64,000 nucleotides of DNA from Parasitella parasitica NRRL 2501 (taxonomy: Eukaryota; Fungi; Mucoromycota), in NCBI GenBank assembly GCA_025201805.1, contig MU619237.1, positions 365,552 to 429,551 of the forward strand, in the 5' to 3' direction. The notes under the pieces were generated by a model. It was not told where the DNA came from and searched no databases. It worked only from the letters and a program-made list of their open reading frames with translations. Positions 45,940 to 60,384 of this stretch are shown here, piece by piece (position 1 is the stretch's first letter; every line of letters begins with the position of its first letter). The translations under genes and the position numbers were made by a program.

Positions 45940-46642
45940 ACGAAAAGAAATTATTTCCATGGGATTTTGCATGTTGATGTCAACCCTAATTTTTGTCTCA
46001 AGATATTTGGTTTGAATACCTCGATATGATAAAATTCAACTTATCGATCCAGGTGTAACACTTTTTACCAAGGCATATTTCAGGACATGCCATTTAATTG
46101 GTGTTAAGTTTACATTTGCTTTTTGAGAAGCGTTTTTCTTTGATATTCTAAAAACCAACATCATCACTATCGCTAAGCGATTTGAATAAAAAAAAACTAA
46201 AGCTAAAAATCAATATGATAAAGCGAATAAATTAAAAATATTTTGTCTTAGCACTGTAGAACTTTATTCATGCAGCTACACTTGTAAAAGCTCGAAATGT
46301 TGATCTGATGCAAATTGAGTCGATTTCAGACCCAACACAATGCTTCTTTTTGAAGGCTGTACCACTGGGTAGTTTAAGAATGCATGAACCACATTTGTGG
46401 ACAAAGCAATCAGGGTAACCGAGGGTTCCTTGATGACTGCACCTCCTCCCTATGTTCTTTTTTTCTGAATCCAGGGCCACTCTTCTTTTTCCATAAAAGT
46501 CTATAAACCGAAACTTGATTTTTATCCATATATGGGTAAAGACCGGAACTCGTTTGTTTTTCTTTACCCCTGAAACTCGGACCAACTTAACTAAACAACG
46601 TAACTTTTATTTCTTCAAATCATGGCATACACAGAAGGTGTA

Positions 46643-49600
46643 TTACTTCAAGGGAGCTTGGCAGACAGGACATTTTTTCCCTTCAGGACGCAAGACAAGA
46701 CGTCTGATAATTCCACATTCTGAATCCAAGGTATGTCCACATGGTAACTTACAGCTCAAAGGTTTGATACAAGAGCCGCATGGTTCACAACAACGGCGCA
46801 TACACTGATGATTGCACTCGAGGAACTTCTCGCACTGCTGCTTGCAGCGGTATTCATTATGATCATAAGGATGGCATTTCAAAGTACACTGAAAAATAAA
46901 CAATTAGAGATGATTGTCATCAGCTTAATTTACCCTTACTCTGTGTCCACAAGGTAACAGTTCATTACACTGCTGTTGGCAGCCACCTTCTTCCACAGTT
47001 GTGAAATCAACGGGCCATTGAACCTGCGTAGGTTGGCCATGTTTTTGGCACTTGAGAACCAGTTTAGTGCCAACCATATTTTCATTCTGATCTTCAAGGT
47101 TGCCAATTATTTCATTCCACAAGTCGCTTCTTTCACACAGAAGTCTTGCATTGCCAAGAATGTAGAAGCCCTACATGTATAGCGATATTGAGCAATCTAT
47201 CGTTATATGGACACACGCATCATACTTACATGTTTTGCTCTGGATAAAGAAACACAAACACGATTGACAACCTTCAAGAAACCAATTTGGCCAGCTGCAT
47301 TGCTTCTTACCAGGGAAAGAATGATGATTTTGTTTTCTTCACCTTGGTAGCCATCCACACTACTGACTTGGATCAGCTCTGGATCCATATCTGGTCTTCT
47401 TTCATCTCGAAGGGCTCGCTTGATCATGGTCTTTTGGCCTGAATACATTGTAATGATTGTGATTTCCTGTGGTTGATATCCTTGCAAAAGCAGATACACT
47501 GCTAATTTGGCTGCCATTTTGGCTTCATGTTCATTGACCTTGGATGCAGACTCGCTCATATTGGTTTCGTCTTCATTATGAGCCAAAAAGAATAGCGATT
47601 GATCCATTCCACGAATGGGAGGATATGTCAGCACATCAGGATGGTCCATAAGAGGAGGGTCCTTGTAAATTGGGTTGATGAGAGAACGAATTTCAGGACG
47701 CATTCGTCTTTGATGAGACAAGCGCGTGAACGGAAAGTCGTTCATGACTAGACGCTCAAACAGCGAGACACCTAGTGCATGGTTTTCGGCCAATTCATGA
47801 ACTGCTGTTGATGGTCTTAATTGCTGGTGATCACTAGTAGATATCATGTATTAGTGCCTACATCTCGTATCAATCCCAAGCTACTCACCCGATCAATATA
47901 AGGTGCTCCAAGGAATTGGTCAGTGCAGATATAATGTGAGATTCCAACATTTCAGCTGCTTCTTCCACAACCATGACTCTAGGACGCATTTCCTCTAGCA
48001 AATCGTGGTATTTGGCCTGCATTGGTTTAGACAACGTTATGTGTGATCAAATGGGGTACTTACTGCAGCTGTACTTGTCATGCCAACAACTCTGTTCTGC
48101 CTGCAAATCCTTGCTTCAAAATCGGCTATAACTCTTCGAATACTTTGCGATTTCTCGTAGTACTGCCTCATGAGAGCGTTCAGCTTGGCTTCCAATGCGG
48201 CATTTCTCTGATCTATCCACATTTTGTGTGCCTTAAGGCGTACAGGCAGGGGCCACATCGACAAGTCGTCATCCTTCATCCAGCGCTCCAACGAGTGATT
48301 GTGGCTATCCTGCTCCAGCACAGCTTCGTCAATATTGTCGTCGAAAAAGTTGAATTTGGTTGATTCAAAGGTGTTTGTGGTTTTCATTTTACTATAATTG
48401 ACAATCTTTCTTTCAGGGCGCTCACCAGGAGCGACTTCGGTTTGTCTTTTGTAGTTTTTACCGATCTGAATAAACGGATATTTGGTTTCTGGCTGATCAT
48501 CGCCTTGAAAGCCTATGATGACTTCTTGAAGCTCTTCTTCTTCGATCATATCTCGCTCGTCAGTTGTATCGTCAAACACCAAGCCCTTTTCTTGTTCAAG
48601 AATACTTTGCTTCAAATCATCAGCTAGCGATGACATTTCTCCAGCATCATCAACATAATCAATCGCATCCTTCAGCCATCCTTCAACAGGGTTGATGGTC
48701 TTTTCCTTTACGGAGCTCACTGTATTAGGATTTCCACCAGCCCAATCATTATTTGCGCCTTTGTTGCTGGTTCTACCTTTACTGGGATGTGGCTTCTGTC
48801 TGTTGTTATTTCTGTTATTTCTACTGTTGACAGGCGCTTTGGGCTTGACTGGCTCTGAGCTGACAACCCATTCGTCATCAGAGTCGTCAGCGACATGATA
48901 GTCATTGAGACTAGTCGCTGCTGCAACAGGTTTGCTCTTTTCCCGTTCGCCTGCTCTTTTTAATGAATCGATCTGCTTGGGTCTCAGTCCTTTGATGCTC
49001 TCTATGTATTCAATTGTGACGCATGGCTCCTCATATAATTCGATGATTGTTTCCCTGATTGCCTTTACAAGGCCATCGCGGTCTCGATACAAGCGGGCTA
49101 TTCCACGGGGCCGGTCATGCTCCTTCTTCAATTCATACAAAGTGTGTTCTTTCAGCAGTTCAGATTTTGACCTTCCACCTACACGGACGATTTTAGTGGT
49201 GTAATCCAGAATGTGTTCTAAAAATTGATCGAGAGCTTTTGCAATCGAATTTGAGTTAATCGGTTGGATATCGCAAGTTTGGCACTAGCAGATCTTACCA
49301 TGATTTGTCTGGCAAATACAAACAATGGGGCCCATAGAATTATCGAAATTGTTCAAGAGTACTCGCATGGCATAAGTGCCAACAAAAGTCTTACCAGTAC
49401 CCGGAGGTCCTTGCACGATCGACAAATTATGTGATAGAATGGTTCTCAAAGCATCCATCTGGGTGCGATCCATGCCAGTGTTGTAGCTGGGCCATTCTTC
49501 CAGGATATTCACTGGCCAGCGATCGCGACGTATGTTTCTTGACTGGACGTTAATGTCGTAGACATTTTTCTGTGCGGCGTAGTGAGGCACAAGAACTTCG

Positions 49601-50817
49601 TTTGACAGCTTTACCAAATAATCAGAAAAGGGCAACTGATCCGCTTTGACGTTTTTAAAGACGTTGAGCACATGACGGTATGCTTCAAAATAGCCGTCTG
49701 TGGCTTCAATCATGACATAGGTGTCATTCTCGGTTAAGGATGGATCTCCAAAACCCAACGGCTGTTCGTCGTCATCCCTTTCAAGATAAATGTCCACTAA
49801 ATACTCGAAGCGATTTGGTCCACGCATTGGCTCGTCTCCTCTGTTGACGATAGTAGCAACCTTAAGATCCTTTTCAAAATGATCCTTGGAGAGCAGCACT
49901 AACGTACCAGGCATCAATCTCTTGGACTGCTGCCAGTTCACACGAACATAGTAAGGTAACCGAAAGCTGACTCTGTATAAGGGCTGGCGCGTACCAAATA
50001 CAATTGCGTTCAAATGAACCTATACGCATGTAAGAAAGCGAAGGTTTTGCTACAAGTTGGCTGCTACTTACATGCTCGTACAAGCGGTATGGTCTTTGTT
50101 GAGATACTTGCTCCATCGAAATGCCAGCATCATCATTGATGTTGGTATCATTGAAGACTTCCTTGTATCCTTTCACGGCTTTCTGCAGAGGTATCAAGAA
50201 GTCTTGGCGCATCAATTCAAAATGGGTATACAAATACTGGTCAGTGCTGTCGTATGGTTGTTTGACACGGTTTACAGGGACGTCCGGAAACGGGTCTCTG
50301 TAATTGCGTTGATCCCACTCATTGGGATCTCGAAGCTCTTCAGCTATCACAATTTGTTCAAAGTTTGGAATAATGTCCTGTCCACGGAAGGCCGTATAGT
50401 CTGTCACTTTTGAGAATATTGGTGCGTCCTCAATATCCATATTCAGTCGGAAAGTCGTCGTAGCCTCTGGTTCTCGCGTGCTAAACTTGTCTTGTACGTA
50501 ACCATGGTCTTCTTGTCCTTGCTCATTCCAGACGGCTTGCGTCTCGGGAGAACCTCCCCAACCTCGTTGCGAGTCAACTGCCCAGCTCTGAGATGGAGCA
50601 ACGTTTCCAAAATCAAACTTTGAGCGTGCAGGTGGCGGTCTCCTGCTAGGAGTTATCTCAAATTCATTTGTAAGGTTATTAAAATTGGCGGTAACGACAT
50701 TTGGTCCACTTGTGCTATGTGTTTACATTGGTCAGAATCACGCCTTCATTATCAATAGCTCTTTTATTACAATTGTGAATCCCAGTCGCTTTTGGTGCTG
50801 TTGTTATAGCGAGACAT
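46643..50817 (-). CDS. rnhA: SF1 Upf1-like RNA helicase with NFX1-type zinc fingers (ZNFX1/Sad-3-like); sex-locus-flanking rnhA
   Basis: QGPPGTGKT, CQTNHALDQFLE, VVGMTSTAA, VEEAAE, IGDHQQLRP, SLFERL, QRRMRPEI, VDGYQGEENKIIILSLVRSN, NRVCVSLSRAK; C-terminal CGH.C..CH repeats; about 8 exons. Confidence 0.93.
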
Positions 50818-50890
50818 TGTTTTGAAACACTAAAGAAAAGCTAAAATACAGAAACTAAAGTCTTGGATGAACTATGACCGGCATTTAATT

Positions 50891-51472
50891 TTATTTTTCA
50901 ACGTTAATCCATAAATCTATTATGGTACGAAAATCGATGTTAGCTCCATCAATTATTAAGTGTGCATCATCAACACTAGATGAAGGTAAAGTAGGATTTG
51001 ATAATTCTTTTACTATATAATCAAATGGTTCAACTGGAGATACCGGTTTGTTCATGCAATCTGTCATTTCAATCTGTGTGTGAGATGTAGAAATCTCGTC
51101 ACTGGATGAGCTTGATGATTCAATTACTTGAATGCTTGTTTTTTTAGTTTTTGATCGTGGAAGTCGCTTTTTCTTCGTAATAGGATTGAATTTGTAAAGC
51201 GGATGTAATTTTTTGTGCTGTATGCTCTTTTCTTCGGCAACTCGGCTCCACTGTCTTTTTTCATATTCTGACATTAGTTTCCAAGCATCCCTTGCCATAC
51301 GTGATATATCACACTGCTTTTCTTGCTGGTTCATGACATCGCGAAATTTAGAATTAAAGTAGGTCCGGAAACAAAGGAATGAGTTTGATGGACGTTTAAT
51401 TTTCTCTTTAGTGGGTCCAGTCTTCTGGGATTCTGAAAGAATGTCTTCAGCAGTAGTGATAACTATCTTCAT
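50891..51472 (-). CDS. sexM: Mating-type HMG-box transcription factor, most likely SexM (193 aa, intronless)
   Basis: KIKRPSNSFLCFR..DISRMARDAWKLMSEYEKRQW..AEEKSIQHKKLHPLYKFNP plus a basic tail; lies between rnhA and tptA/algA. The short length, N-terminal HMG box and YxFxP ending favour sexM over sexP. Confidence 0.85.
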   Translation of the reverse strand: MKIVITTAEDILSESQKTGPTKEKIKRPSNSFLCFRTYFNSKFRDVMNQQEKQCDISRMARDAWKLMSEYEKRQWSRVAEEKSIQHKKLHPLYKFNPITKKKRLPRSKTKKTSIQVIESSSSSSDEISTSHTQIEMTDCMNKPVSPVEPFDYIVKELSNPTLPSSSVDDAHLIIDGANIDFRTIIDLWINVEK

Positions 51473-52326
51473 TTTTCTCAAGGATATAATTGTAGGAGGA
51501 AAGAAAAATGCCCTAATTTGACTCAGGCACGGATGATTTATATTTTCCAAAACAATGAAAACGGAAAGTGCAGCCAGGAGTTACACGGAGGGGTGGCATC
51601 ATATCAATGCTTCGGCATGATCTACTATACTACTCAAATTTTAAAAAAAATCGTGTTACCTCCTCTAATGAAAAAGAGGATTGCAGAGTTTAAACCCATT
51701 TTGGATAGTATAGAATCTTTTCAAACAAAAAATGTGCAATCTTCATTGTTGAGCTCCTGAAAAATTTAAAGAATCTATAGGTAATCACTTCACTTAAGAT
51801 ATTGAGATTAAGAGTTGTTGAAAGTAATTTCAGGGACTGTTCGTAGTAAGGGCTTAGTAATAATCCCATTATTTTGCTAATAATAAATCTTGTTATTAGA
51901 TCATTACTACTATATATCAGCCAGCTATTAGACACATACCTTTACAATACATATCATTTCTAAAGTTCTGTCCTTACATGAGATTGTATCGCCTTTCATT
52001 TAGGGAAAACGAGTCTATAACATTTGCTCAAGGAATAAATAAATATCCAAGCAATACTTCTTATCAACCCAGTTTTCAAAAAATAACGAAGACTATTACA
52101 GAATAGCACTTTTCTCACCTTGGCATAAGTGATGTGCCGAGCCTTCGAAATCAACCACAGGAAGATGCTGCAATAGTTCCACAATCAACATTGGCCTGGT
52201 ACAACAAGAATCAACCCGTTGTACCTATCAGAGCCACGAGCCTACAGCAAAGATAAAAAAAAAAAGGCCACCTTCATCTAACAAATATAAAAAATCCAGA
52301 AATACAGAAAGAATTATCGATATATC

Positions 52327-52800
52327 ATGCTACCGATTTGAAATGCAGTTTGGAATTAGGTACTTGGAGGCCAACATTTTGTGCCATCTCGATAATCTTA
52401 TTTTCAATTGCTGCATGCGGTATATATTAAACTGCTTTACAAACAACATTGATAAATACATTGCTAACGCCTTTTGATTCAAAGTAAATCTTACAATGGT
52501 ATTATCTAGCCTGGCTGCTTTTGGTGCTATATTATTGCAGTAGTCAAATCGAGTACTGTTTTCTGGACTCAGCATAATGCCTGGAGATTCGGGTCTAGTA
52601 CTTCGATATTTAATTCGTAGTATAGTATTAATGTATATAGGCTTTTGCGCCATTGTTCGTTATTACAATATTCTACAACCTTACGTTCAAAACCTGTTCA
52701 TACAGAGAGTGTCCATGTCTGCATTATTACTTATGCTGGATGTCGTCCTCGCCTACTCTTTTATTTTTTCGTATGATATTGTTGGGTTACCCTATTGATC
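52327..52800 (+). pseudogene. tptA: Pseudogenised triose-phosphate-transporter-family gene (psi-tptA), divergent from the sex gene
   Basis: 52391: DNLIFNCCMRYILNCFTNNIDKYIANAF*FKVNLTMVLSSLAAF/WCYII, matching the family pattern C..WY.SS.LTNN..K.I...F.YP.TLT..QF. After an AG acceptor, 52641: AFAPLFVITIFYNLTF.../VSMSALLLMLDVVLAYSFIFSYDIVGL, matching AL.PLFTV..Y....Y.SL.PLTLGV.LACSF. In-frame stops, frameshifts, and the expected syntenic position. Confidence 0.75.
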
Positions 52801-53279
52801 TTCCAACAGCCGTCAAATAGAGATGGTCAAAAAGACTACACCAAGACTTGCTTCCATACAGTTGTATGAACTTGTATCAAAACTAACTTGGAGTAACCAA
52901 TGAATCTTGGTCTCACGCCTTCTATTTTGTGGCTATTAAAAAGTTATAGATTCAAATATTGGCTTCTAAATCCAGATCAGACAAAAATGAGACTGAAATC
53001 AAAAGCCATGCAATGGGGAGCAAACTTGATGGCGGTTGCGATGTAGAAAAATATTACCAAGACGTGAGATACGAGGCTGACGATATATAATCTTGCGTTC
53101 AATAATCTAACCTGGCCATTGGTGCTGTACATTGTGCTCTTTGACAGATATCCCAAAATTGTTTCAAGGTTAAACCTGAAGGTTTCAAACGTCATATTTA
53201 ATAAGTCTCAGTGTGTCAGCCTTTGTTATCAATTTTTTTCTTCCCACTTTTTCGATTAAAATTAAATTAGAATAGAACA

Positions 53280-54678
53280 ATGGGACCGAGGAAGCCAGAA
53301 GTTGAATACATTTCGTTATCGAAATTACAAGCCCAAAAACGAGCAGAACCAACCGAAAAGACAAGGGAGGCTTACAAGTGCTTGGAAAAGTTAGCAAACA
53401 ATGCATTGAAAAGTGGGCCATACAGCATCACTTTCGACAAGAAGCAGGCCCATACTGCACCAACAGGCGATATGCGAGATTTCCTTAGTTACGCTCCGTA
53501 AGTTACTCCAAAATGCTCTCAAACGATCGATCTCTAACCTCTTGCTTTATATCTTAGATATTGGTGGCCTGTAAGCTGAGATGATGTTTTCTTTGTGATT
53601 TTGAAAACTGAATAGCGTATTAAAACTTAGGAACATCCCAACGATCGCAACACAAAATACATCCGTAAAGACGGTAAAAAAAATCCAGGTATTACATTGC
53701 AATGCATGTGTCTGACAAGGGGTAGAGCCACTGATAGATGAATTTTTTTTATTATAGACGTAGCGGAAGCAAGAGATCAATGCCAGTTAGAATCCGTCGC
53801 AGAGAGCATACAGTTTTTATGCTTGGGATACTTTTTTTTCAATAACGAAAACTATGCTATTCATGCGGTCTCATTACTGGACTCTTTCTTTGTCAATGAA
53901 AAGACGCGAATGAATCCCAATCTCAATTATGCTCAATTCGTAAGAGGCTCTCAGAATCACTCGCATCGAGGCCGCGGCGAAGGCGTCATTAGCTCCAGAG
54001 CGTAAGAAGCAGGTTATTTGTTTTTTTAGACACATAAAAAAAGCTAAATTAATATTCTCTTTTAGCTTATCCCGCATCGCGAATCTTTTACCGCTTTTAG
54101 ATGCATTCCATGGCTACTATGCATTAAAGCAATATATACACTCTTGGTTCGGCTCATATCTTGAATGGCTCCAGTCGAGTCGTGTCGCGTTAGAGGCTGC
54201 AAAAGCTACAAATAATATCCATACGTGGTATACTGTGCAGGTAGCTGCAATAGAGCAATTCTTGCACCCTGTATCCCCTCAAGTATCCAACGTACTGTAC
54301 ACATTCTTCAAGGAATCCCTGCCAAAGCAAATGGACGCCAAGACAGGCAACCAGCCGCACGAATCAAAGCGAACAAGGCCGCTTCATTATCTCACCTTCA
54401 ACCTGCAAGCCATCGTATTTCTCGCAGAGGTATCCAAGGACGTCGGACTAGATGTTTGTCGTTCCAATGATCTGGTTAAACTAGCGACGTACATCACGAA
54501 ATATGCATCTGACGATAATCAGGACATTACAGAGGCCGTTCGCTGCGTCGAGATCATTGCCAACGGAACTGGCAATCAAGACGAAACCTTTCGATTTTTC
54601 CTTGACAAGGCTTATCATTGCAAATTTGCAGAGAAAATGGGTGGCCCCAAAAACGCGATCCATGTGCTGTGGTCTTGA
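53280..54678 (+). CDS. algA: Alginate-lyase-domain protein (sex-locus-linked algA; about 5 exons)
   Basis: APTGDMRDFLSYAP|YWWP|..YIRKDGKKNP, FFVNEKTRMNPNLNYAQFVRG, NNIHTWY, QPHESKRTRPLHYLTFNL. Confidence 0.88.
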
Positions 54679-54879
54679 AACTACTGTGAATATCGTCAAC
54701 TGTCAATATTTTGATGCAACTTTTAATAAAACCATGCATCAAGGTACGCAAACATTGGAATTATACTTTATTTAGATATATCGTTTTTTTTTTCTTTCTT
54801 TGCTTTCAAATATTATCATACCGTCAACCGACACAATGGTGCCCTTTTTCTCTCATTTTCCTTTACTCAATTTGCTTGG

Positions 54880-57800
54880 ATGAGAGTTGCTATTGACCGC
54901 GGGCTGCCGTGGCTACTCATATTTATATCGTTCATTTCAGTAGGGTAAGTTTTTTTTTGCAGCAAAGGCTCAGAGTAATGTATGTGGTACGACACTGACA
55001 TATGCTGACAGAACCAAGGCAGCAGATGGTAATACGCCCCTTCCATCATCCTCTTTGTCTTTGCGCAATGGGATTGACCAACTGGATTTACCAGTGCTCA
55101 ATGCTGACCAAAATGCGGGAAAGGAGGCTCTCGATGATATATTTGCAATAAATGCCGTTACTGTAACAGCTACAGCAACAGCCAAGGTGTCTTCTACTGT
55201 CACAAGCACCATCAAGTCAACCGTTCCCGCCTCCAGTTCAACCACTGGCACAGTTTCTCCCAAAAGCACTTTGACTGTTGTTGTTTCTACCACTGTGTCA
55301 CAGTCTTCTACATCAAAAACTAGTTCTGCGGCATCTAGTACTTCCAGTAGGAGCACTTTGACAACAGCAACTACAACGACAGCCAAAACGACTTCCAGCT
55401 CTACGTCTTCACCAAGGTCGACGTCAACACCTACGCCAACGCCAACGCCAACGCCTACACCTGAGCCAGTTCCAGATCCAGTTGTTTATCCAACGGAAAT
55501 CGATACTGATTTACTAATCTTTTGCTTAAACAACATTGATCAGACCAGTTGTGCAGATCTCTTCCGCCTAATTCACTTCTTTTTCACTGCAAGGCTCAAT
55601 TCAGATCCGGTTCTCGTGGAGTATCTTTTGGAGATTGGCGTCGATGTGCCTGAAACAGATGTAGTCACTGCGACCTCTACGTCAACATCTAGTGTAAGTT
55701 TCCTCTTGTTTACCTGACGAGCTTGGTATATTCAAACTTTATAATGTGTAGCTCTTCTTTACTGAATACACAACGACTACTGTCAGTACAAACTCAATCG
55801 AAGTTGTCAGATCAACATCCACAGTATACGTAGATTTCGTAAGTACTGGGGAGTGCAAGGAAAAGATACAAGTCTACTAATAGCTGTTGATAGAGCGATG
55901 ATGGCGGCAGTACAGCTGTCGAAACTAATGGACAGATCTCCTGCTCTCCTGCACCTCCCCCCGAAACTGTCACGGCCATTTCGACTCAAGTTTCCACCAG
56001 CACTGCCACTGTTCTGCACGTTTCAACTGCCACTGTAGTGAATCTGGTTACGGTAACACCTGATCCAGCACTAGGCACACTGACCGCCGGTGGGCCTGTT
56101 GAATGTGGTTTGGTTTTGGCTAATACTGCAGTATTCAGCTGTCTGGCTATGATAGCGCAAGTCACTCCACCACCGTTTCCATCTGAATGCAGTGAATTGC
56201 CCGACTACTTGGGTCCCATTGATCCACTGGCAGCATCTTGTTATGCTAGCGAACCTGTAGTAACTGATACTTGTTCTGCCTTACAGATAACTCCTACTAC
56301 TGCCACCTACACAGTAACAGATCCTTCATTCACAAGTACGGTAACCGCTCCTGCTTCAACTGTAACAGCTCCTCCCACCACAATCACCGAGCCTGCTTCC
56401 ACTATCACAGCTACAGAGGTAATTGTTGTTGCTGATCCGCTAGGCCATGATACCTGTGGGTTAATTTTGGGCGGTAACGGCGAGGGTATGTTGGATGGTG
56501 ATGTGGCGTCCTCTTGCTTGTCCAGTTTGTACAGCAGAGTATCGTATCTACCTTATACAACTACACTTGTTCCTTTGACCGAAACAATATTTGCAACTAC
56601 GACCCAAACCGACACATTTACGGCTACCGAAACATCGCTAGATATTCGATTAATTACTGCGTCCATAAGCCATACTGTTACAGAAACAGCCACGGATTTC
56701 GAGACAGAGTATGAGCTGACTACCGCTACCGTCACAGAGCATGATACATCTACAACTACAGCTACTGTAACAACTACAGATACAGCTTATAGGACAGAGC
56801 ATGAACTGACTGTGGCTACCGTAACAAGCACAGAAACTCAGACCAAGACAGACGTGGATATCAGAATAGTTACAGCCACTATCGAATCTACCTTGACTAC
56901 AACTGTGCACGATACTGTCACTAATTTCGCAACGCTGACCAGTACAGACATCAAGACAACTACAGACACAATTACAGCAACAGCAACTACCACAAGTACA
57001 GATCGTTTAACAGATATAGACATCCGACTTGTCACTGCGACGGTGACAACCACATCCATACTGACAGACTATAAGACTATCACTGACTATGCAACTCTTA
57101 CTGCGACAAGTTTCAACACGATAACAGAAACAGCAACAGCCACTGCCACAACTACAGCAACCAATTTTGTAACTAAGGTAGACGTTAGCCTCGTTACTGC
57201 AACCATCAGCGCTACAGCAACAGTGACAGAGAAGGACGTTGTTACCAGTTTAGCAACCATCACAGCAACAGACCTGAGAACTACCACAGACACCATCACA
57301 GCAACATCTACAGTTACTGAAAGAGTCACTGAGACTGAGGTTAGCCTCATCACTGAGACTCTGAGCAGCGTTGCCACTATTGTTGAGTATAATACTGTAA
57401 CTGACGTATCCACAGTTACCAGCAGTGTATTTAGCACCATTACAGACGTCATTACTGATACTTTGACCACCACTCAAGTCAAGACTGAAGTAGACGTTCG
57501 CCTGGTTACCGCCACATTGACCACCACTGCTACCGTTGTCGAGCGTGACACAGTAACTAGTTTGGCGACCATTACAAGCATAAGCACAAGCACAAGCACA
57601 AGCATTGGTACAGTAACAAACACACTCACCGAAACAGCAACGTCTACACAGACTCAAACAAGAGTAGACGTAAGCCTAGTTACTGCCACTATTACAGCAA
57701 CGTCTACAGTTTCAAGTATCGATACTCTCACCGATTATGCAACAGTGACAAGCACAAAATACAGCACATTGACAGATACAATCACATCCACATCCACATC

Positions 57801-60384
57801 AACGTCTACACTCATTAAACATGTCACAGACGTCGATGTTCGTCTGATCACAGCTACTATAAGCACAACAGCCACTATTACTGAGCATGCTGTATCTACT
57901 GAATACGTCCCAGTAACTCAAAGCGGCACTGCAGGCACCATTGCTACTGTAACTATATCAGAGCTGGTCACAACAACGCAGCGTGTAACTGATGTTGATG
58001 TCAGGCTCATTACGGCTACAATGACTACTACAGCCACAGTAACTGATCGTGATATCATTACGCAATTCAATACAATCACCAACACAGCAACAAGCACTAT
58101 CACCTCTACTGCCACTGCTACGACAACTGCTACCGAGCGGGTGACAGATGTAGATGTCCGTCTGGTTACAGCCACGCTGACAACGACAGCCACTTTAACT
58201 CAGCATGAGACTCTCACTGAATTGGCCACGATAACAAGCACTGCAACTACGACTAGTCCTGTCACTATAACCAGCACTGCTACAACCACAACAACTACTC
58301 ATGTCACGGATATAGATGTCAGGCTTGTCACCATAACAAACACCCAAACATCGACTCAGCACGAGACATCCACTGCTTATGCAACGATTACAAACACAGA
58401 GACATCGACTGCAACCAACATTATTACTGATTTCAGCACCATCACATCGACAGCTACTCAGCGTGTGACAGATGTGGACATCCGTTTAGTAACTGCAACA
58501 ATCAGCACTACTTCTACAGTGACAGAGCGTAGCACAGTAACAGACGTCGCTACCGTCACTCGAGATGTAATAGAAACCGCCACCATTACATCGACAATCA
58601 CTGACGTAACTACAGCCATTACCACATCAACAGCTCACATTACAGATGTTTCTGTGAGCTTGGTTACAGCCACCATCCATGATACATTGACAGCTACTGT
58701 GCATGACACTATTACGTTGCATGATACAATAACAGATACTACAACCAACACAGTTACCGCGACAACCACTGCTGTCAAGACTTCTACTCAGTATGTCACC
58801 GAAGTGGATATACGATTGGTCACGGCCACCATCACGACGACAGCTACTGTCACTGACCACAACGTGTCCACCTCTTTAGCCACAGTGACACAGAGCGTCT
58901 TTGAAACAGACTTTGTTACAGAAACTTGGACTACAACAGCAACTACCACATCAACAGATTTACGCACTAGTGTGGATGTCCGTCTTGTTACTGCTATTAT
59001 CAACAACACAATTGTACAAACATCGCTCCAAACGTTTACGTCTTACCTGCCACTTACAATCAACGTGACAGACACTCAAGTATTGACAACAACCACAACA
59101 GCTACTAGCACAGACACTGTGCATGTTACTGATGTAGACGTTCGTCTCGTAACAGCCACAGTTGACAAGACGGATACTGCTACTACAACGACTACGGAAA
59201 CCTCCTTGGGTACATCCACGACAACTGAGTATGTCACTAAAACGGACGAGGTCCATCTGCATATTGGAACAAGCGACCATATTGTGCATCAAAGCGATTT
59301 GACTATAACGTGTATCGGTGAAGACGGCAACGTGGAGATGCATGGCTACGTAACGAATGATTTTGGAGCTACAACCGTCTATTATGGAGACTATGATGAG
59401 GATGGGCATAACCATCACTATCACGGCCATGGAGACTACTACGGAGGAGGTTATTACAACGGGCACCGTTATGGCAAGTACTACGGAAGCAGTGAGGTCT
59501 GCAGCACATTCACTACTATCGATGAAAACGGTAGCCAAGTTACCGTCACTTCGACCGAGATGATTGCTCATACCGATATGCTTGATTATACTTTGGTAAC
59601 AGCAGAAAGCACTACATATGGGGTCGGACAGCAGCTAGTTGTTAGTACAAATATTGACATGTAATAAGGAACAACTTCCATTAACTTGATTTTCTTTAAA
59701 TGCTAGTATAAAACCGTTTGCTCAACGTCAACCAAGAGCCCAACTGCAGAACCCACAGCTGATTTCAGGGATCCATCAATATCAAGCATGGATGTCAATA
59801 ATTTGATCATCAACTGCGAAACTTTGACTGAAACAAAGTCAGAAACGTTTGGCCATTGCTCTGTAAGTTTTTATTATACGTGTATCTAAAGACGAAACGA
59901 CTCATAGCAACTGCTGCGATAGGATGTATTTATGACTTATACATCGTCATTGTGCGAAATCTGCAGTGCTCCTGTTCATGTCACGTCTACTCAAGTACTG
60001 ACGATCCCAGTCATTATGGAAAGCCATGAGGCCAACCACTCCACGAAGCAAGACGATACAGAGGTTGTTTACGTCACGGAAACAGTTGGGGAGCCTGAAG
60101 CAACAGCATATATCGCTTCTAATAGCATCAGTGACACTGAAAATGGCGAGGATACAGAAGTAGTGCATGTCACTGTAACTGCGCAAGGCGAGCCGCTTGA
60201 TATTTCCACAGGACCAGCTACAAGCGGCGGTGACGAGCAAGAACATGCTGCTGCTTCAAAACCAGAAGATTCAGAGGGCCATGTTGTTTTCGCAACTCCA
60301 ACTATTCAATACAACCAAGGCTACTCGGAAGAAGACCCACATCTTTTGTCTGCCACAAAAACTGTCAATGGAGGAGCTGTTTAA
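54880..60384 (+). CDS. Large secreted Thr-rich tandem-repeat protein (mucin/adhesin-like, ~1,700 aa, 6 exons)
   Basis: Signal-peptide-like exon 1 MRVAIDRGLPWLLIFISFISVG; ORFs 55055-55717, 56038-59664 and 59932-60384 joinable by GT-AG introns; about 16 repeats with core T(D/E)VD(V/I)RLVTAT. Confidence 0.85.
56630..59200 (+). repeat. Coding tandem repeat array, period ~50-60 aa (~155-185 bp)
   Basis: Recurrent VD(V/I)(R/S)L(V/I)TAT motif; degenerate at the DNA level. Confidence 0.9.

Follow-up and report, generated by a model that had tools for sequence, protein, structure and literature searches.

The triplet of tptA, the sex gene and rnhA is the textbook mark of the Mucorales sex locus and serves to find sex loci in new genomes. 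Its member tptA belongs to the triose-phosphate-transporter (TPT) family, is found next to the sex gene in most Mucorales, and encodes a ten-helix transporter composed of two five-helix halves. In the genome of Parasitella parasitica NRRL 2501, sexM and the alginate lyase gene agl are separated by a spacer of about 1.8 kb without a long ORF, and the question raised by this locus is what became of tptA. The window analysed here is a stretch of 64,000 nucleotides of contig 1 of the genome (365552-429551), and all window coordinates count from its start. An initial annotation, made from the letters alone, had proposed a tptA pseudogene beside the sex gene, and the tblastn, genome-wide, nhmmer and frameshift-aware searches described below agree with that proposal. 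With a probability of roughly 0.93, the sex-locus tptA survives as a unitary pseudogene at its original site, window 52065-52789 (+).

The gene order in the window is rnhA and sexM, both on the minus strand, followed by the tptA relic and agl, both on the plus strand. Synteny with Mucor circinelloides is collinear on both flanks, and protein identities to this species are 75-94% for the rnhA exons and 73-78% for the agl exons. The 5′ untranslated region of rnhA holds a 56-nt intron (50715-50770, minus strand), with a CT..AC joint in RNA contigs. A giant Thr/Val-rich repeat ORF lies downstream of agl (55463-60036, plus strand). It is syntenic with a 1752-aa gene located at the same position in M. 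circinelloides (L017 13317-18866), and is thus a conserved sex-locus neighbour and not a Parasitella novelty.

Reference proteins for the search were chosen by gene context. The second exon of a TPT gene on contig 21 was used as the query and recovered two groups of Mucorales proteins, which were sorted in this way; those with an HMG gene divergent upstream and agl downstream were taken as true TptA. The proteins from Helicostylum (P0040) and Blakeslea (P0028) are encoded divergently from the adjoining HMG-box gene, the order in Blakeslea (L016) being glrA (+), a further gene (-), rnhA (-), HMG (-), TptA (+) and agl (+). TptA of M. circinelloides (P0126), found in a second search, lies in the order rnhA (-), sex (-), tptA (+), agl (+) in both mating-type alleles (L017 and L018). 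Proteins from M. fragilis (P0003) and Thamnidium (P0009) were dropped as TptA references, both genes being located beside iPGM and hence paralogs.

Each of four context-verified TptA orthologs has a sole significant tblastn match in the whole 64-kb window, at 52391/52400-52789 (+), with E values from 1.8e-10 to 4.3e-7. One paralog protein gives 1.5e-4 and two others nothing, and with ORFs of the TPT paralogs of this genome as queries the matches to the window stay at noise level, so that the search calls for true orthologs. A six-frame search of the whole genome with P0126 found contig 1 positions 417942-418343 (window 52391-52792; E 2.5e-8), with an internal TGA and TAG. At the DNA level, an nhmmer profile of three functional tptA genes matches only 52294-52554 (E 7.9e-17) and 52629-52793 (E 3.9e-7), and blastn of the M. 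circinelloides gene against the relic gives 64.5% identity over 231 nt (E 4e-19) in the first transmembrane block. Frameshift-aware protein-to-DNA alignment of P0126 with 51551-53279 scores 232, compared with a mean of 45 (sd 7, maximum 61; z 28) for 60 dinucleotide shuffles and 48 for the reverse complement. The Pfam TPT model (PF03151) has no match in the window at E values up to 10 in a six-frame genome scan that did find the paralogs, and the ORF pieces yield no TPT match, only sub-threshold noise. The family assignment therefore rests on close orthologs and not on a curated model, and annotation pipelines and synteny-based sex-locus searches will miss the relic because Pfam is blind to it.

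Relic coordinates were mapped onto the 461 residues of M. circinelloides TptA, and the frameshift-aware alignment spans residues 5-270 (Table 1). The two blocks described in the initial annotation stand, but the relic is larger than was stated there, as it begins near 52065 with a recognisable N-terminal hydrophilic region. Taken by itself, this region scores 59-74, which none of 100 shuffles reaches (mean 30, sd 4). No ATG is present at the expected place, about 52053. Further downstream, the frame of 52328 reads ...NLIFNCCMRYILNCFTNNIDKYIANAF*FKVNLT..., where the asterisk is the TGA already noticed at 52475, and 24 of the 45 residues of the first transmembrane block are identical to Mucor TptA.

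Table 1. Features of the sex-locus region of the window. Residue numbers refer to M. circinelloides TptA; an asterisk within a peptide denotes a stop codon.
Feature	Position	Strand	Basis and remarks
rnhA, RNA helicase gene (ZNFX1/AAA_11/AAA_12)	46634..50827	(-)	collinear with M. circinelloides rnhA; covered by RNA contigs
(-) idiomorph, 1534 bp	50825..52358	(.)	1499 other letters instead in the X5/X6 allele
sexM CDS, HMG box	50891..51472	(-)	HMG-box ORF 50891-51550; match to published P. parasitica SexM
Spliced 5′ leader of sexM	51473..52278	(-)	RNA contigs; exons to 51876, 51940-52014, 52119 to at least 52278
Relic, N-terminal hydrophilic region, residues 5-97	52065..52340	(+)	frameshift-aware alignment; inside (-) idiomorph
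Relic, residues 98-121	52342..52389	(+)	after +1 shift at 52341; TAG at 52357; idiomorph boundary 52358/52359 inside
Diverged transition zone	52359..52608	(.)	52359-52462 diverged, 40 extra letters; 52463-52608 (146 nt) replaced by 60 letters
Relic, first transmembrane block, residues 122-166, DNLIFNCCMRYILNCFTNNIDKYIANAF*FKVNLT	52391..52516	(+)	TGA 52475-52477
Relic, rest of exon 1, residues 167-197, FWCYIIAVVKSS...	52519..52611	(+)	third frame; frameshift-aware alignment
Collapsed exon 1 end and intron remnant	52612..52640	(+)	residues 203-217 (GHVFSSIAISRVPVS region, 15 residues) missing
Relic, exon 2 start, residues 222-270, AFAPLFVITIFYNLTFK then RVSMSALLLMLDVVLAYSFIFSYDIVGL	52641..52789	(+)	frameshift 52695-52696; nhmmer E 3.9e-7
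457 bp in place of TptA residues 271-461	52790..53246	(.)	no tptA similarity; single-copy in genome
agl, alginate lyase gene	53247..54754	(+)	ATG 53280; transcript contig starts at 53247; RNA contigs confirm the GT..AG introns

The three functional tptA genes are composed of two exons, with a single intron exactly between VSLVHTIK and ALAPLF. A middle exon, which the initial annotation had been unable to recognise, is therefore nonexistent, and the part that was missed is the remainder of exon 1, in another frame. The intron remnant in the relic is about 25 nt of stop-rich sequence that has lost its donor side and ends in AG at 52639-52640. Directly after this AG, exon 2 opens with GCT TTT GCG CCA TTG TTC (AFAPLF), as had been read from the sequence, and since this is the intron position shared by the functional genes, the AG is the conserved acceptor. 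Exon 2 is divided into two sub-blocks, 52641-52694 (residues 222-239, the AFAPLF block) and 52697-52789 (residues 240-270, 15 of 31 identical), and the ...VVLAYSFIFSYDIVGL block stops at 52789.

In addition to the missing start codon, the relic carries at least four in-frame stops, which include a TAG at 52104 and a TAA at 52254 in the N-terminal region and others at 52357 and 52475, as well as five frameshifts and a 15-residue (45-nt) deletion. Stops and frameshifts had thus been rightly reported, as had the failure to recognise the C-terminal half. For the 190 C-terminal residues, frameshift-aware alignment of four TptA proteins with 52790-53279 gives scores that 13-74 of 100 shuffles equal, and the nhmmer tptA profile matches nothing in this interval. 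The 457 bp that occupy this place are single-copy in the genome and so do not represent an inserted repeat of recognisable type; their sole resemblance to the tptA-agl spacer of M. circinelloides is a weak one, at 53177-53243. Relative to Mucor, about 360 nt are missing. A continuous ORF over both five-helix halves is absent from the relic, and given the stops, frameshifts, deletions and absent C-terminal half, a ten-helix transporter cannot be encoded.

Amino-acid identity between the relic and Mucor TptA is about 42% over 232 codons, compared with 73-94% for the neighbouring genes, and 47 of the 89 residues that are invariant in the three functional TptA proteins are changed. Identities to Mucor at codon positions 1, 2 and 3 are 0.61, 0.72 and 0.39 in the relic and about 0.76, 0.90 and 0.45 among the functional genes. 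A faded coding signature persists, to which the protein-guided alignment itself contributes in part. Of the first and second codon positions without variation among the functional genes, 31% differ in the relic, corresponding to a Jukes-Cantor distance of about 0.40. The GC content of the relic (0.35-0.37) is at the intergenic level, coding sequence having 0.42-0.46. Judged by divergence, constraint is relaxed in the relic relative to its neighbours.

Further copies of the locus were available as assembled contigs, and 5,501 letters of the window were compared with them. Runs X5 (organism A) and X6 (organism B) contain the same 41,139-nt contig, which represents another allele of the locus. 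The two runs show identical differences and may stem from a single strain submitted under two labels, from mislabelling or from a co-culture; they are therefore treated as one source of data. The 1499-letter segment that takes the place of the (-) idiomorph in this allele is presumably the sexP idiomorph. The rnhA transcript contig ends (50827) at the left edge of the (-) idiomorph (50825), while the other idiomorph boundary, at 52358/52359, cuts through the relic, the 5′ part of which is inside the (-) idiomorph. Beyond the transition zone, the two alleles differ at 11 sites over 52609-55500, 3 of them within the relic (52609-52789). As the opposite allele carries the same broken 3′ part, tptA is dead in both mating types, and it died long before the flanks of the two alleles diverged from each other (by about 0.4%).

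Run X4 was taken as RNA by its behaviour, its contigs being joined at GT..AG across the agl introns and carrying terminal adapters; they cover agl (from 53247), rnhA and sexM. None extends over 52392-53246 and no sense transcript of the relic was found among them, though contigs cannot prove silence. The 5′ leader of sexM is long and spliced, with two introns at 51877-51939 and 52015-52118 that read CT..AC on the plus strand (GT..AG on the minus strand), and its first exon is antisense to the N-terminal part of the relic. Antisense leader contigs cover 51987-52278. It is conceivable, though doubtful, that sexM has co-opted the 5′ third of the relic for its promoter and first untranslated exon, and that this use preserves the relic and fixes the idiomorph boundary. 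The minus-strand first exon (52119 to at least 52278) is located inside the relic N-terminal region and the mating-type-specific segment ends just past it, at 52358, in line with such a takeover; however, the transcript data come from one run labelled RNA by guess, contigs cannot show a start site, and an unspliced contig over 51987-52148 is also present. A takeover would in any case not conflict with the pseudogene reading, to which it adds only a secondary use.

In M. circinelloides the idiomorph boundary is in the tptA promoter (PMC3116813), and both mating-type alleles encode identical TptA. In Parasitella, the boundary of the mating-type-specific segment would have come to lie inside the former coding sequence after the death of tptA. 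We tentatively suggest, as one possible course, that the dead gene was invaded for about 300 nt by an expanding non-recombining segment and that the (-) allele recruited the DNA as the first exon of the sexM leader and its promoter. If true, the relic would mark a dated step of sex-locus expansion, and the death of a flanking gene would free the idiomorph boundary from the constraint that had pinned it.

The pseudogene reading further requires that the stretch is the original gene and not a secondary TPT copy, such as a duplicate or retrocopy of the contig-21 gene or a transposed piece. The possible source is an intact two-exon TPT paralog beside iPGM on contig 21 (79414-80485, plus strand; L004), which has its intron at the same position as in tptA and predicts a protein with about 62% identity to TptA. 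However, the product of this paralog scores only 96 on the relic, against 232 for Mucor TptA. The same separation is seen more widely, as TptA-clade proteins score 130-232 and paralog-clade proteins, including that of Parasitella itself, 82-107, such that every TptA-clade protein scores above every paralog-clade protein. In a maximum-likelihood tree, for which the relic was translated across its breaks, each stop and shift becoming an X, it joins TptA of M. circinelloides, M. ambiguus and M. velutinosus within the TptA clade with an SH-aLRT of 100, although the relic branch is extremely long and the placement is less certain than this value suggests. The TPT paralogs form a separate clade (SH-aLRT 100), in which that of Parasitella groups with those of M. 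plumbeus, M. fragilis and M. circinelloides, mirroring the placement of the relic. The TptA-specific motifs NCCMWY and TNNxGK are kept, where the paralogs have CCFMWY and SSNTAK, and the intron remnant with its acceptor argues against a retrocopy. Position and orientation are also exactly ancestral: the relic lies between the sex gene and agl and is divergent from the sex gene, as the initial annotation had remarked for Mucor and as is the case in both M. circinelloides alleles and in Blakeslea. Orthology of the stretch to the sex-locus tptA, and not to the TPT paralog, is supported by these comparisons, and a secondary copy is very unlikely.

The contig-21 protein, of a housekeeping type, has an annotated P. 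parasitica counterpart with 100% identity, whereas the window SexM is 82% identical to the published Parasitella parasitica SexM over its full length, with a 7-residue indel. The contrast suggests either that sexM evolves fast or that the species name covers divergent lineages.

Neither the Pfam TPT six-frame scan nor the P0126 search found an intact tptA-clade copy elsewhere in the genome, a possibility that the initial annotation had left to be checked; the only intact relative is the contig-21 paralog, at an iPGM-linked locus that is conserved in M. fragilis and Thamnidium. This paralog is likely to be a functional back-up for the lost gene, and the loss of tptA would have been tolerated because the paralog covers the transport function. 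Reciprocal loss of tptA and the paralog was considered and rejected, as M. circinelloides, M. ambiguus and M. velutinosus have both.

That tptA is in fact intact here and only looks broken through faults of sequencing or assembly is highly improbable. Homopolymer-rich AT DNA is error-prone and the lesions have been seen again in independent data at the contig level, not in reads, but errors would have to account for at least four stops, five frameshifts, the 45-nt deletion, the collapse of the intron and the absence of the 570-nt 3′ half, together with substitutions at more than half of the invariant residues (47/89). The contig from run X3, which may be the source sample of the assembly, is identical over the whole 5.5-kb stretch, and the X5/X6 contig is a different allele with the same 3′ lesions. 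A chance likeness of AT-rich, hydrophobic-looking intergenic DNA to a membrane protein can be dismissed, since, although there is no Pfam TPT match and short hydrophobic matches to unrelated ORFs do occur, it is rejected by four statistics (tblastn, frameshift-aware score, genome-wide search and nhmmer), 0 of 60 shuffles reach even one third of the score, and the blocks follow one another collinearly, with correct order and strand, at the syntenic site.

The remnant is therefore best read as the sex-locus tptA itself, which is lost here by decay in place and not by rearrangement, much as had been surmised for this core sex-locus gene. Since the neighbouring genes are unaffected and the decay took place on the spot, the loss in at least this lineage is a pseudogenisation. 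The literature searched contains no earlier description of a tptA remnant or of the Parasitella sex locus, though a prior description is possible. Absence of tptA is already known from M. mucedo, M. saturninus and some Rhizopus, and the mode of loss is not described in the literature searched. A pseudogene is an ordinary kind of object, and secondary interest attaches to the overlapping idiomorph boundary and sexM leader. The relic opens the questions of whether similar relics are present in other species without tptA, whether tptA is dispensable by way of the paralog, and whether the boundary moves once constraint ends.

The closest known system is tptA of M. circinelloides, which is both the best-scoring relative and the tree sister of the relic. 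The two share their neighbours and orientation, the order continuing beyond agl into the giant repeat-protein gene, as well as the intron position. They differ in that the M. circinelloides gene is intact (461 aa, two exons) with an idiomorph that ends upstream of its ATG, whereas the relic is broken and without its 3′ half, and the Parasitella idiomorph ends about 300 nt into the former coding sequence. The contig-21 paralog (SLY41-like, P0002) belongs to the same Pfam TPT family as tptA and has the same intron position, but, unlike the relic, it is intact, occupies a different locus, which Mucor and Thamnidium have conserved, and falls into a clade of its own.

The usual order at the locus is agl/tptA/sex/rnhA, and M. 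saturninus is without tptA (PMC7928374). M. mucedo is likewise given as lacking the gene in the passage of that paper that cites Wetzel et al. 2012. Parasitella shares the agl/sex/rnhA order of these two species, in which agl is followed by the sex gene without a functional tptA in between. The statements on M. mucedo and M. saturninus record the absence and mention no remnant, whereas Parasitella keeps a relic. The paralog tree puts M. mucedo and M. saturninus together with Thamnidium and Pilaira, and Parasitella together with M. circinelloides, M. fragilis and M. plumbeus. As tptA is kept both by Thamnidium and by M. circinelloides, at least two independent losses are implied, and on this phylogenetic evidence the loss in Parasitella appears to be independent of that in M. 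mucedo and M. saturninus.

The sex loci of Rhizopus microsporus and R. stolonifer are also without a flanking tptA (PMC5982828). Parasitella is like Rhizopus in showing that the tptA-sex-rnhA triplet is not universal. However, the Rhizopus flank holds glrA and a BTB-domain gene, which points to rearrangement, while in Parasitella the flank is unchanged and the gene has decayed in place.
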